Shown in pieces: positions 7,375 through 18,371 of a stretch of 64,000 bases of DNA. A model generated the notes under the pieces. The model saw only the letters and a program-made list of their open reading frames with translations. It searched no databases and was not told the origin of the DNA. Each line of letters starts with the position of its first letter. Within the stretch, counting starts at the first letter, position 1. This stretch comes from Macrostomum lignano (lineage: Eukaryota): contig NIVC01000103.1 in assembly GCA_002269645.1 (NCBI GenBank), positions 865,393-929,392 of the forward strand, read 5' to 3'. Position numbers and translations under genes: made by a program.

Positions 7375-10300
7375 CTATTGATTAGCGAAACTTGTTAGCA
7401 GATCGCTAAGATCGACATCTCCGGGCTTCTGAGGCTCCGGACGTTTTCGCTTTGTTGGCGGATCTGAAAATATATAGATATCAAACATGAATATAAGATG
7501 AGAAATGAACAAAATCTTATCGCTTCAGAATAAGCTTCAGCCTCACCCTGGTCAGAATTATCTGCAAGATAGTTGAACGAGAACATTGCGTGTGCAGCAG
7601 TCGGGCTGTTCAACAGGATGATTTCGCTGTCGCAGGTGATATCGTTGTGCGTCTCGGAGATGATTAGCTTGGCAGCGATTCTCTCGCTGGCCCCGACAAA
7701 CCAGTGTGCAACGTCCGGCTTTGTGACAATCAGCAGGTGCTGCGGGAACCGGTGCATGAGGTGTTGGGTCTGTGTGGTAGTAACAACTAAAATCTAACAA
7801 ATTAGGCTTTTACAGATGTGTCTATGTGTTACATTGGAACTCACGGTACAGATCGGCTGTACAGTCTACGTACTACGACAAAGTAGTCGTATAACATACG
7901 CACGTACTACGAGCTACTCTTAGTAGCGTTTAGTTCCTTTAGGGTTTTGCAGGCGTTGTGGCCTAGTGGTTAGAGCGTCGGACTCACGACGGAGAGGTCA
8001 GGGGTTCGATTCCAAATCCCACTCGGGACAATTTGTGCCCTTGACCTTGAGCAAGACACTTAACTCTGCATTGCTTCAGTTCACCCAGCTGTTAAATGGG
8101 TGCCAGCATTATCTGGGGTAAGTGAGGCTGTGTGTGGTAACCCCCCAGTCCTTGGACTGAGCAGTCGTGCGCAGCCTAATAGCTGCGGCTGAGCTGTCGG
8201 TTGCACATTTGGGGCCCAATTTGGGCAGGTGCAATCAATTATTTACCTTTGCTTACCTTTTTCACCTGTTTCATGGTGCAAGCAAACAAAACATTAGGTT
8301 CAGCTTCAATTCGTGCAGAATAAGAAGCCAAGTCCGAGCCTACAATTAAAAGTACATTTAAAAGTTACTCAATCAAAATATCAAAGGCAAAATTGCAGAA
8401 AGAAAACTCACGTTGCAGTTTTTTATCGAAATAGACCCAGAAGTCAGTCAGACCAGCTACCGGGGCTTCGGTTGGATGAACCCCATAAGAGTTCAGCTGT
8501 GCTTCTTTGCCTGAAAATAGAAAACAATTACGGCAGTTATTAGACTGATAATGTGAATAGAAATTTACCTTAAACCACAGCTGCTAGTGTGGCAGCCAAC
8601 TGTGCAGTGATCCCACACCCCCTTCAGTGTTCCCACGCCCCCTCAGTGATCCCACATCCCCTTCAGTGATCCCACATCCCCTTCAGTGTTTCCACACCCC
8701 TTCAGTGTTCCCAAACCCCTTCAGTGTTCCCACACCCCCTTCAGTGATCCCACGCCCCCTCAGTGATCCCACATCCCCTTCAGTGATCCCACATCCCCTT
8801 CAGTGTTCCCAAACCCCTTCAGTGATCCCACACAACTCCTTTACTGATCCCATACCCCTTTTAGCAATCCTATAGATTTCTTTTAATTATTTCACATCCA
8901 ATAAGTGATACCAAATCTTTTTAAGTGATCCTAGATCCCCACAAGTGATCCGACAAAACTTTCACTGGTTTCTAACGAAAAGTAATTTATTGTACTCTTA
9001 TGTCAGGAGACTGGGGTGTCAGGAGAGACTGAGTTGTCAGGAGAGACTGAGTTGTCAGGAGACTGGGTTGTCGGGAGACTGGGGTGTCAGGAGAGACTGA
9101 GTTGTCAGGAGACTGGGTTGTCAGGAGACTGGGGTGTCAGGAGAGACTGAGTTGTCAGGAGACTGGGTTGTCAGGAGAGACTGAGTTGTCAGGAGACTGG
9201 GGTGTCAGGAGAGACTGAGTTGTCAGGAGACTGGGGTGTCAGGAGACTGGGGTGTCAGGAGAGACTGAGTTGTCAGGAGACTGGGTTGTCAGGAGACTGG
9301 GGTGTCAGGAGAGACTGAGTTGTCAGGAGACTGGGTTGTCAGGAGACTGGGGTGTCAGGAGAGACTGAGTTGTCAGGAGACTGGGTTGTCAGGAGACTGG
9401 GGTGTCAGGAGAGACTGAGTTGTCAGGAGACTGGGTTCTCAGGAGACTGGGGTGTCAGGAGAGACTGAGTTGTCAGGAGACTGGGTTGTCAGGAGAGACT
9501 GAGTTGTCAGGAGACTGGGTTGTCAGGAGAGACTGAGTTGTCAGGAGACTGGGTGTCAGGAGAGACTGAGTTGTCAGGAGACTGGGTTGTCAGGAGACTG
9601 GGGTGTCAGGAGAGACTGAGTTGTCAGGAGACTGGGTTGTCAGGAGAGACTGAGTTGTCAGGAGACTGGGGTGTCAGGAGAGACTGAGTTGTCAGGAGAC
9701 TGGGGTGTCAGGAGACTGGGGTGTCAGGAGAGACTGAGTTGTCAGGAGACTGGGTTGTCAGGAGACTGGGGTGTCAGGAGAGACTGAGTTGTCAGGAGAC
9801 TGGGTTGTCAGGAGACTGGGGTGTCAGGAGAGACTGAGTTGTCAGGAGACTGGGTTGTCAGGAGACTGGGGTGTCAGGAGAGACTGAGTTGTCAGGAGAC
9901 TGGGTTCTCAGGAGACTGGGGTGTCAGGAGAGACTGAGTTGTCAGGAGACTGGGTTGTCAGGAGAGACTGAGTTGTCAGGAGACTGGGTTGTCAGGAGAG
10001 ACTGAGTTGTCAGGAGACTGGGGTGTCAGGAGAGACTGAGTTGTCAGGAGACTGGGTTGTCAGGAGACTGGGGTGTCAGGAGAGACTGAGTTGTCAGGAG
10101 ACTGGGTTGTCAGGAGAGACTGAGTTGTCAGGAGACTGGGGTGTCAGGAGAGACTGAGTTGTCAGGAGACTGGGGTGTCAGGAGACTGGGGTGTCAGGAG
10201 AGACTGAGTTGTCAGGAGACTGGGTTGTCAGGAGACTGGGTTGTCAGGAGAGACTGAGTTGTCAGGAGACTGGGTTGTCAGGAGACTGGGGTGTCAGGAG

Positions 10301-16300: not shown

Positions 16301-18371
16301 TCAGCCATCCTGGCCCAGCTCCGACGAGCACTTGGCACTTCTTGGGGTCTATCCCCAAAGCGGCTTTGGTGGATCTATACTTCCGTAGTTAGACCTGCCA
16401 TTACGTACGCCTCTGTTGTCTGGGTTAGCGCTACCCAGGTCAAAAGCCATGCAGACCTGCTCAACACGATCCAAGGCAGAGCGTGTAGGCTCATCTGCAA
16501 CGCCACCAGGTCCACGCCCTTTGCTGGCATGGGGGCCTTCCTTAATCTTCCGCCTCTTGACCTCTTCATCAGGGGTGAGGCGGCTAGAACGACGCGGCGT
16601 CTAATTGATGCCGGCGTCAAATTCATTTACATGAGAGCACCTGCTAAGCGGAACTTTGTCCAGCATAGCGATCTGTGCCTCAACTTTCTCAACGAGTGTC
16701 AGGCCAATCGCGTCTTCACCGATGGCATTGCCTCAACGCTCAACCTGAGACAGCGCTACTCCGTAGCTATCGACTCGCGCGATAACATCAATGACCAATG
16801 GAACCCTGGTGAGCTTCATTGCTACACCGACGGTTCTAAGCAGTCAGCCAACACCGGCTTTGGTGTTGGAATCTTTCTGAACGGGAAGGTCATCGCTACC
16901 CACGCTCAATACACGGGGGTCAACTCCAGTGTTTTCCAAAATGAAGTTCTGGCCATCAGCTCCTGCACTGCAGAGCTTCTCGCCACTGGCGTTACTGGTA
17001 AGAACATCATTTTCCATTCGGACAGCCAAGCTGCCTTGCACGCCATCAGTGGCTGCAGCACCAACTCTGCTACAGTCCTCGACTGTATCAAACTCCTCAA
17101 CATGTTGGGTTCCGCCAACAAAATTACCCTTAAGTGGGTTCCGGGGCATGTGGGGATCCGAGAAAATGAGTTGGCTGACACCCTTGCAAAAGTTGGTGCC
17201 TCCGGCTCCTCTCTCGGCCCCGAACCTCTTGTCCCGATTCCTGGCTGTGTCATCGACTCGCGCATCAAAGCGTGGATCAGGACTCAGCACCGCTCGACTT
17301 GGGCGAACCGCACGAACTGCAGGCAATCCAGAGGCGCTGTCCCTCAGCCCTCTCACCAGCTCCGGAAGCTCCTCTTGCGCCTCTCGCGCAGAGACATCCG
17401 GGCTGCCACCATGACCCTCTCTGGTCACGGCTGCTTCTCCAGGCACCAGTACCTGCAGGGCAACGCCACCAACGCCACCTATAGCTTCTGCAACTCAGGT
17501 GACGAAACCGCTGAGCATTTCGTCAGCATCTGTCCCGCCTTCACGCGGGCCAGACTCACTTACCTCGGGCCACACACATCTATTACTGAAGCGTGCAAAC
17601 CCGAAAACTTTAATCAGCTCATGCGCTACCTTCGGGCCACCCGCAGGGCTGAACTCTCCTTTCCAGAGAGCACCATAGCTGCTGGCGACACTGGGGGACC
17701 TCCCTGGGCGGCGCCAACCCTCCGTCCATAGCGACGCGTCGGCCGTTCAGGGACTAGCGGAATGGGCGCCCGCGCCTTCCCGCTGTGTAAAAAAAATCCT
17801 TCGGGACAGCCCTGCAGCTAAGTCAAAGTAAGTCAAAGGCTGGCTCAGCAACTGAGGATCTGGGAGGCTGACTCAGCAACTGAGGATCTGGGAGGCTGGC
17901 CCAGCAACTGAGGATCTGGGAGGCTGGCCCAGCAACTGAGGATCTGGGAGGCTGGTGGCCTAGCAACTGAGGATCTGGGAGGGTAGTCCAACCTAACAAG
18001 AACAATCGATAAATTTGAGCAGACTGTAAAACTCACGCAAATTCGAACTCAGTCTTGTTACTAAGCGAGTCCACATCCTTCTTGAGCTGAAACGCCCCAT
18101 TGCTGCAGTTGTCTCCAACCATAAAGTAGGGATGAGGAAACAGGTCCGGATTGATGGTGGCGCCAATAATGATGAGGCTCTTGTGCAGCAGCGGGTCAAT
18201 GCCGGACACTCGCAGCCTCACGTGGCTCCTATTGCCTGTCCTGCCGTACAGCAGGCCGCCCAGTTTACCATTGGAGACTTCAGTTTCGTAGCGAAATCGG
18301 TGATAATCGCTTGGCTGCTCTAAGAGTTCAATTTTCATTGTTTTATTATTACGCAGAAATGCGTTCAACAT
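7375..18371 (-). CDS. Chimeric Rel-homology-region gene RHR2 (~344 aa): DNA-binding exons from an RHR1 duplicate + IPT/NLS exons from an RHR3 duplicate
   Basis: Exons 18371-18037, 13281-13184 and 13028-12891 are near-identical to RHR1 exons 1-3. Exons 8510-8412, 8339-8257, 7739-7547 and 7463-7375 match RHR3 exons 4-7 and end [10 protein letters not shown]...FANQ*. Phases are compatible; total 1035 nt is an open frame. Intron 1 contains a LINE; intron 3 contains a dead exon and a 3 kb satellite. Confidence 0.7.
7952..8212 (+). mobile_element. tRNA-derived SINE with CORE-like domain
   Basis: A box TGGCCTAGTGG and B box GGTTCGATTCC, then CCTTGAGCAAGACACTTAACTC...CAGCTGTTAAATGGG resembling the MIR/CORE domain. 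Paralogous copies at 21058 and 32616. Confidence 0.72.
9001..12696. repeat. Expanded 16/18-bp satellite with higher-order structure, then a 31-bp array
   Basis: 16+18+16 = 50-bp higher-order unit from 9001 to ~11100; 18-bp units to ~12050; 31-bp units 12070-12696. Confidence 0.95.
12719..12817 (-). pseudogene. Decayed pseudo-exon (duplicate of RHR1 exon 4) inside intron 3 of the chimeric gene
   Basis: Acceptor cattttAG|GACAG of the 1837 copy reads catttttG|GACAG here. There are 8 nt differences in 99 nt, giving 5 aa changes including the family-invariant W->R. Confidence 0.75.
14168..17838 (+). mobile_element. 5'-truncated non-LTR retrotransposon (APE-RT-RNase H; I-group, LOA/Lian-like)
   Basis: APE motifs GDLNAHH..WG and SDH; RT motifs [30 protein letters not shown]; RNase H motifs YTDGSK, SDSQAAL, WVPGH; degenerate C-terminal zinc knuckle; 3' tail (TAAGTCAAAG)x2. 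Inserted in the 28-bp satellite and absent from the paralogous intron at 2329-3716. Confidence 0.93.
14182..17731 (+). pseudogene. LINE ORF2 (endonuclease-RT-RNase H) broken by two 1-nt frameshifts
   Basis: Frame changes near 14605 (resumes as [14 protein letters not shown]) and near 16240 (CTCGG-GTC, a missing G in CLGVILD). The APE N-terminus is missing. Confidence 0.85.

Follow-up and report, generated by a model that had tools for sequence, protein, structure and literature searches.

A 64,000-nt window of the Macrostomum lignano genome (contig NIVC01000103.1, positions 865,393 to 929,392, assembly Mlig_3_7, GCA_002269645.1; record coordinate = window coordinate + 865,392) contains an array of Rel-homology genes, all on the minus strand, in which a chimeric gene (18371-7375) lies between its two parents, RHR3 and RHR1. 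The whole account that we favor, at a probability of about 0.55, is that a real duplication in one subgenome produced a transcribed chimeric gene encoding a two-domain Rel protein, with RHR1-type exons supplying its 5′ half and RHR3-type exons its 3′ half. The window sequence, the whole stretch under analysis, matches the contig at 100% identity and is eukaryotic, rich in minisatellites, and free of N. A protein search with the proposed chimera returned matches to M. lignano Rel-homology domain (RHD) proteins only.

The tandem duplication and its junction

Self-BLAST bears out the tandem duplication proposed in the first-pass annotation (729-8996 repeated as 9001-22510) and refines its ends, placing copy A at 726-9000 (8.3 kb) and copy B at 9001-22525 (13.5 kb). 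Read along the minus strand, copy A comprises RHR3-type exons 4′-7′, which form the 3′ half of the chimera, followed by an intergenic stretch and RHR1 exons 1-4. Copy B comprises RHR3 exons 4-7, the corresponding intergenic stretch, and the RHR1-type exons 1-4 that form the chimera’s 5′ half. Four collinear blocks link the copies, at 93.4% identity (1431-3207 with 12411-14167), 94.8% (3519-4412 with 17836-18731), 93.5% (5775-7831 with 18927-20987), and 84.6% (7932-8860 with 21039-21981). The two copies differ in length because of a 3.7-kb long interspersed element (LINE) in B, a 1.2-kb insertion in A, and differing satellite copy numbers.

Each end of the duplicated unit falls in a different gene, one in intron 4 of RHR1 and the other in intron 3 of RHR3, and these two genes have the same orientation. 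Within the junction region (8975-9020), ...ttattgtactctta runs up to position 9000 and tgtcaggagactgg... begins at 9001. Unique RHR3-intron-3 sequence here meets the first unit of an 18-bp satellite belonging to RHR1 intron 4. The join shows 1-2 bp of microhomology and contains no N, and its two sides have no repeat in common. The round window coordinate of the join is a coincidence, as its position in the record is about 874,392/3. The 18-bp satellite (9001-12044) and a 31-bp satellite (12070-12696) fill most of the resulting 4.2-kb fusion intron. The LINE is a non-LTR retrotransposon on the plus strand (14167-17836), lying antisense in chimera intron 1 and absent from copy A; its Exo_endo_phos_2, RVT_1, and RNase_H open reading frames (ORFs) occupy three different frames, and the element is probably degenerate. 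The insertion specific to copy A (4413-5626, ~1.2 kb) sits ~360 bp upstream of the RHR1 ATG and is absent from copy B and from both sister contigs described below.

The same array also appears on two further contigs of the assembly, L002 (NIVC01000278.1) and L003 (NIVC01000085.1), in its single-copy ancestral layout, in which an RHR3-like gene is followed directly by an RHR1-like gene with no duplication. The duplicated region is thus represented by four distinct sequences (A, B, L002, and L003), which in pairwise comparison mostly match at 94-97%. Between A and B, identity ranges from 86 to 97% across the blocks, and A is 95-96.5% identical to L003 except in one 0.64-kb block. Near-identity is local: A and L003 match at 99.7% over RHR1 exons 2-4 (0.64 kb), and L002 and L003 at 99.9% over RHR1 exon 1. 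The sequenced inbred line has three haplovariants, S, L1, and L2, with a single-nucleotide polymorphism divergence of 1.9-2.4% and negligible heterozygosity within each subgenome (PMC10733133). Four distinct sequences set against three homozygous haplovariants therefore indicate a true duplication, with one subgenome carrying two copies, and we regard the tandem duplication as very probably real.

Exon anatomy and transcript evidence

Seven minus-strand exons had been predicted for the chimera from the letters of the window, and all of them stand: every border is AG/GT, and the joined 1035-nt frame is open, encoding 344 amino acids with no stop. RHR1-type exon 1 (18371-18037) has its ATG at 18371 and a second one, beginning MKIELL, at 18338, and carries the recognition loop HRFRYETE. 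Exon 2 spans 13281-13184, and exon 3 (13028-12891) ends the N-terminal Rel domain (...VITDS) at a gtaagt donor that reads gtgagt in the other three copies. The RHR3-type part begins with exon 4′ (8510-8412), which encodes the interdomain linker and the first strands of the C-terminal domain, and continues through exons 5′ (8339-8257) and 6′ (7739-7547) to exon 7′ (7463-7375), which carries a KRKR motif and the stop codon.

The proposed order of RHR1-type exons 1-3 upstream of RHR3-type exons 4-7 is correct as a layout, but the duplicated unit holds RHR1 exons 1-4 rather than 1-3. Nor does the DNA break fall at the domain boundary, as had been suggested. The breakpoints lie in non-equivalent introns of the two genes, and the fusion was therefore created with two exon 4s. 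It is the exon 3/4 border that aligns with the interdomain linker of p65, and a clean domain join requires skipping of the redundant RHR1-type exon 4 (12817-12719; 99 nt, phase 1-1), which is located 73 nt downstream of exon 3. Copy B alone has TG (TTG) at the acceptor of the redundant exon (12819-12818), where copy A and the contigs L002 and L003 have AG (TAG). The following AG (12814-12813), 5 nt further on, would shift the frame into an immediate TAA.

The chimera already has a GenBank entry of 354 residues, PAA90848.1 (“hypothetical protein BOX15_Mlig000125g4, partial”), which we identified by enumerating 354-residue splice variants and then looking each up exactly in a protein collection. 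The entry exactly matches the predicted product of exons 1-3, a 48-nt mini-exon, and exons 4′-7′. Its gene range corresponds to window positions 18353-7375, with a 5′-partial coding sequence starting at 18353. The mini-exon (12766-12719, phase 1-1) is the last 48 nt of the redundant exon 4, entered through an internal acceptor (cacag/TCGG). It inserts 16 residues between the two domains and turns the junction residue from Ser to Arg. Use of this internal acceptor agrees with the acceptor mutation found only in copy B. Two other 354-residue candidates, one retaining intron 6 and starting at MKIELL, the other using an alternative exon-6′ acceptor and starting at MLNAF, were not in the collection, and the protein that represents the cluster of PAA90848.1, a fragment of L003-type RHR3, is uninformative about the junction. 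The clean 344-residue product, spliced 12891 to 8510, that the first-pass annotation had put forward is in no database searched; neither that exact product nor its MKIELL-start version occurs among 15 billion proteins, and the sole model on record keeps the mini-exon. A literature search on the gene identifiers found no paper that mentions them.

The Mlig_3_7 annotation is derived from RNA-seq through STAR, StringTie, TACO, BLAT-mapped de novo transcripts, and TransDecoder, with TBONE making cuts at spliced-leader and poly(A) sites (PMC5730564). Because the gene models were built in this way, a junction-spanning transcript probably exists, and its existence in turn argues against a mis-join in the assembly. 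The intron at 12718-8511 joins RHR1-type exon 4 to RHR3-type exon 4′, and the required downstream order of these exons is present only at this locus. The two types of exon 4 are only ~43% identical as protein, so cross-mapping cannot produce this intron. We therefore consider a chimeric transcript likely.

The RHR1-like genes have their annotated 5′ ends at TTTCAG/CGT, which we presume to be a spliced-leader acceptor. At the corresponding putative site (18354-18355, minus strand), copy B alone has CTG, against CAG in copy A and in the contigs L002 and L003. The chimera thus has TTTCTG at this position, yet its annotated 5′ end is placed on that very base; the boundary either was set by reads or transcripts from paralogs or is not defined by this site. 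Both acceptor losses in copy B fit either adaptation, through removal of the redundant exon, or early decay.

Protein domains, sequence exchange and competing explanations

The N-terminal part of the product matches Pfam RHD_DNA_bind (PF00554) with 65.2 bits (cut-off 27) over residues 14-190, covering profile positions 1-169 of 169; the parents and paralogs match PF00554 as well. Relative to p65, the recognition loop HRFRYETEV keeps the R, R, Y, and E residues, the DNA-contacting positions of the Rel signature, but has Thr in place of Cys and Val in place of Gly, and a strict search for RFRYxCEG found nothing because the loop has diverged. AlphaFold2, run on PAA90848.1 with a shallow family alignment, predicts an N-domain and a C-terminal β-sandwich with pLDDT values (predicted local distance difference test) mostly of 75-90; the sandwich occupies residues ~205-305 at 80-90. 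Foldseek comparison with the PDB ranks RelA, c-Rel, p50, p52, and RelB first (E 1e-16 to 1e-11), followed by NFAT and TonEBP, in alignments of ~310-330 columns that cover both domains. These models support the earlier assignment of the C-terminal half as an IPT domain, in that its predicted fold is that of a Rel-type second domain, although Pfam RHD_dimer is silent. The KRKR motif was also correctly placed in the RHR3-type part: it lies directly after the C-terminal domain and is a predicted nuclear localization signal (NLS), at what we take to be the position of the p65 KRKR NLS. The protein ends 24 residues after this motif and contains no ankyrin repeats, recognizable transactivation domain, or further Pfam domain.

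The 16-residue insert corresponds to strand B of the RHR1-type C-domain and so duplicates a strand already present in the RHR3-type domain. AlphaFold2 leaves the insert unstructured, with pLDDT below 50 for it and its surroundings (185-203), and also predicts a disordered tail. In this model, the insert is probably a disordered, long floppy linker. The chimera’s C-domain differs by only four residues from the RHR3-like proteins of the other subgenomes, which makes mixed dimers with those proteins plausible.

The closest counterparts are the class II Rel/NF-κB proteins (RelA p65, c-Rel, and RelB), with which the chimera shares a predicted two-domain organization, the R-F-R-Y-x-x-E part of the recognition loop, and a short linker at the exon 3/4 border; p65 and c-Rel are its best matches in both sequence and fold. 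It differs from them in its length of just 344-354 residues, in having neither ankyrin repeats nor a recognizable transactivation domain, in the loop substitution of Cys by Thr, and in a C-domain too diverged for Pfam RHD_dimer. An engineered RelA-cRel chimera crystallized on DNA (PDB 8u9l), among the top sequence and fold matches, likewise joins two Rel paralogs. Unlike the M. lignano gene, it is man-made, is built from vertebrate paralogs, and has no linker insert.

These features suggest the following course of events. A tandem duplication of ~8-13 kb would have arisen in one of the three subgenome copies of the Rel-homology array, with breakpoints in RHR3 intron 3 and in intron 4 of RHR1, the co-oriented next gene downstream. 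A third gene would have been born at the junction, with an RHR1-type promoter, exons 1-3 encoding the whole N-terminal DNA-binding Rel domain, and the redundant exon 4, followed after the 4.2-kb satellite-filled intron by RHR3-type exons 4-7 encoding the linker, the C-terminal Ig-like domain, and KRKR. Its transcript would run from exon 3 through the 48-nt remnant of the redundant exon into RHR3-type exon 4, to give a two-domain Rel protein with a 16-residue linker insert. Such a protein could bind DNA through the conserved R-x-R-Y-x-x-E loop with RHR1-like specificity, dimerize with the partners of RHR3-type C-domains, and enter the nucleus by means of KRKR. The result might be new half-site combinations or competition with both parents. 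That the chimera is a functional transcription factor is a tentative proposal.

How old the gene is cannot be read from the divergence of the copies. A and B differ at 3.3-4.7% of aligned sites in three of the four blocks and at 13.6% in the fourth, a divergence that matches that among the three subgenome copies of the locus. Quartet counts in the RHR1 exon 1 block favor A+B (18:0:0), while those in the RHR1 exon 2-4 block favor A+L003 and B+L002 (0:0:23), a grouping that includes a shared 27-bp intron indel. The intergenic block has a star-like pattern. In the block of RHR3 exons 4-5, it is the copy-B parent RHR3 that stands apart, with a synonymous divergence (dS) of 0.43-0.44 from all three others; at synonymous sites, the chimera’s 3′ half is identical to the RHR3-like genes of L002 and L003. 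Relative to the chimera and both sister contigs, the outlier block (21380-21731, RHR3 exons 4-5 and the intron between them) has 16 amino-acid differences, a one-codon indel, and 86-91% identity; the likely cause is a far more divergent allele or paralog, not found here, that was either retained or copied in by conversion. Such mosaic ancestry implies frequent exchange between copies, so their divergence does not date the duplication. The description of the chimera as newborn is therefore possible but unsupported, given an A/B divergence as large as that of the subgenome copies. The duplication could itself have arisen by unequal exchange between already diverged haplotypes.

Evidence on selection is mixed. 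The earlier count of 8 synonymous versus 4 non-synonymous changes between the chimera and RHR1 in exons 1-3 is exact (Nei-Gojobori, dS 0.067, dN/dS 0.135), but it compares a gene pair rather than the chimera’s own lineage. We polarized chimera-lineage changes with the other three sequences and took the expectation from the flanking non-coding rate. The chimera exons carry 6 lineage-specific substitutions where 21.7 are expected (Poisson P ~8e-5), and no indels where 4.4 are expected (P 0.013). This low rate of exon change points to constraint or to exon-biased gene conversion from functional paralogs.

Several observations weigh against the favored account. Given the mosaic ancestry, gene conversion could account for the low exon substitution rate, and the lineage-specific changes, ~4 non-synonymous to 2 synonymous, look neutral, although they are too few for power. 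The AG-to-TG acceptor losses unique to copy B could reflect decay rather than adaptation, and, since the first AG beyond the lost exon 4 acceptor leads to a premature stop, part of the transcripts may undergo nonsense-mediated decay. RHD_dimer is not detected by sequence (E <= 1), no chimera is among the M. lignano UniProt proteins returned by the search, and the transcript support is second-hand, coming through annotation rather than reads. In addition, 36% of the Mlig_3_7 assembly length lies in S/L-chimeric scaffolds (PMC10733133), which raises the prior for an artefact.

On a bolder view, the gene would encode a functioning Rel factor with swapped domains that is expressed and still partway through its evolution, its redundant exon trimmed to a 16-residue insert or skipped after loss of the acceptor; we consider this doubtful. 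A rival to the favored account accepts a real duplication and a transcribed locus but sees in the chimera a decaying by-product whose products are mis-spliced, prone to nonsense-mediated decay, or inert, and whose frame persists because little time has passed or because conversion from functional paralogs refreshes it. The two acceptor mutations, the TAA behind the nearest replacement AG, the neutral-looking changes, the frequent exchange between copies, and the LINE and ~4 kb of satellite within the chimera’s introns all speak for decay. Against it, 1035-1083 nt contain no stop or frameshift although the local non-coding rate predicts 4.4 indels and ~22 substitutions, removal of the redundant exon would itself require that the exon 4 acceptor be lost, and the annotated isoform is in frame with both domains predicted to fold. 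On this evidence, we rate decay as unlikely.

Explanations that deny the duplication or its transcript fare worse. The PacBio contig might string together two of the haplovariants S, L1, and L2 from a region that is in fact single-copy, in which case no chromosome would carry the fusion; expanded haplovariants are a known error type in this neopolyploid genome with its redundant assembly and subgenome-chimeric scaffolds (PMC10733133). The absence of the duplication from L002 and L003, the 99.7% identity of A to L003 in the RHR1 exon 2-4 block, and the grouping of B with L002 there would agree with such an error. The number of distinct sequences exceeds the number of reported inbred haplovariants, however, and A is only ~95-96% identical to L003 outside the 0.64-kb block and is thus not a re-assembly of it. 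The junction also lacks any N or shared repeat able to mislead an overlap assembler, and it is spanned by an RNA-seq-derived intron whose acceptor choice is sensible for copy B only; an assembly artefact is therefore improbable. Alternatively, the duplication may be real but the annotated mRNA spurious, with a 5′ half that has no productive 3′ half and a model produced by multiply mapping reads, by the merging of transfrags, or by back-splicing of RNA at a single-copy RHR3-RHR1 locus. The annotated 5′ end at 18353, at a spliced-leader acceptor position mutated in copy B, hints at paralog reads or transcripts, and the pipeline accepted BLAT matches at >=80% identity (PMC5730564). Yet the order of the 12719-to-8510 intron is unique to this locus, the ~43% exon-4 identity bars cross-mapping, and the genomic splice sites on both sides are canonical. 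We consider this explanation highly improbable and retain a real duplication with a transcribed chimeric gene as the best account.

The surrounding array and wider implications

The tblastn searches with exon peptides place the Rel-homology genes head-to-tail. Upstream of the chimera lie Rel gene 5 (exon 1 at 38644), Rel gene 4 (31423-26014), and the parent RHR3 (24445-20546; GenBank PAA90849.1, 340 residues), whose exons 4-7 fall within copy B. Downstream lies the parent RHR1, which runs from 4051 to beyond the window start, with exons 1-4 in copy A, exon 5 at 607-527, exon 6 at 444-274, and exon 7 ~310-390 bp past the window start. RHR1 (window 1-4051 plus ~390 bp outside; L004 ~24300-28740) is intact, and its seven exons are all present with canonical splice sites, but the public record has no gene call for it in the stretch that separates the chimera from the RHD gene after it. 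At ~2 kb past the window start, a sixth RHD gene begins (L004 30378-30979). The array therefore contains at least six short RHD-only genes of ~330-390 residues each and is present in three subgenome copies in M. lignano. Its proteins have no ankyrin repeats and no Pfam domain other than RHD. Such an array of RHD-only genes is Macrostomum-specific; the only relative found outside M. lignano is a transcript-sized Logan contig with 51% identity. In Platyhelminthes more broadly, p50/p105 has been reported absent in one review (PMC11432056).

Repeats are a further feature of the locus. The kB consensus GGGRNWYYCC has 40 matches in the window where 6.4 are expected, all of them inside two satellites (28525-29488 and 44662-45344). 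The first is a 58/118-bp array in an intron of Rel gene 4; the second, built of 29-bp units such as ACAGGGGAATTTCCCTGA, is found ~6 kb upstream of the array of Rel genes. Amplification of the repeats, not independent sites, accounts for this surplus, though near-perfect kB palindrome arrays adjoining a Rel gene cluster are curious. A 28-bp minisatellite (AGCAACTGAGGATCTGGGAGGCTGGCCC) occurs in or near several array genes (2355-3662, 13308-14167, 17837-17982, 25467-25820, and 37102-37351), once inverted, and yields long spurious ORFs on the gene strand. A (TAGA)n run of ~461 units occupies 33243-35086.

The birth of chimeric genes by tandem duplication is a well-known mechanism, and the present case is in GenBank but undescribed as a fusion. 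Rogers, Bedford & Hartl reportedly described in 2009 Drosophila chimeric genes that arose from tandem duplications with breakpoints in two neighboring genes. The M. lignano gene has the same topology, with direct copies ending in co-oriented genes, intact parents, and a 5′-A/3′-B fusion, as well as the same kind of non-homologous join with microhomology. It differs from the Drosophila cases in that its parents are paralogs of one family, so that a module is swapped within a fold. Its breakpoints lie in non-equivalent introns and leave a redundant exon, and the event took place in one subgenome of a neopolyploid, where copy divergence is not readable as age.

If functional, the chimera would be a natural instance of exon shuffling within a single fold, in which the DNA-reading and partner-choice modules of two paralogs have been re-paired, and it would show how a new fusion gene handles a redundant exon. 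A lineage-specific array of RHD-only genes would then have gained a new pairing of DNA specificity with dimer specificity. Both parents and two unduplicated haplotypes are present in the same animal, in which transgenesis is possible, and this would allow a direct test of Rel modularity. The locus also teaches that in this neopolyploid the divergence of duplicates is not readable as age and that gene counts within the family vary with the subgenome examined.

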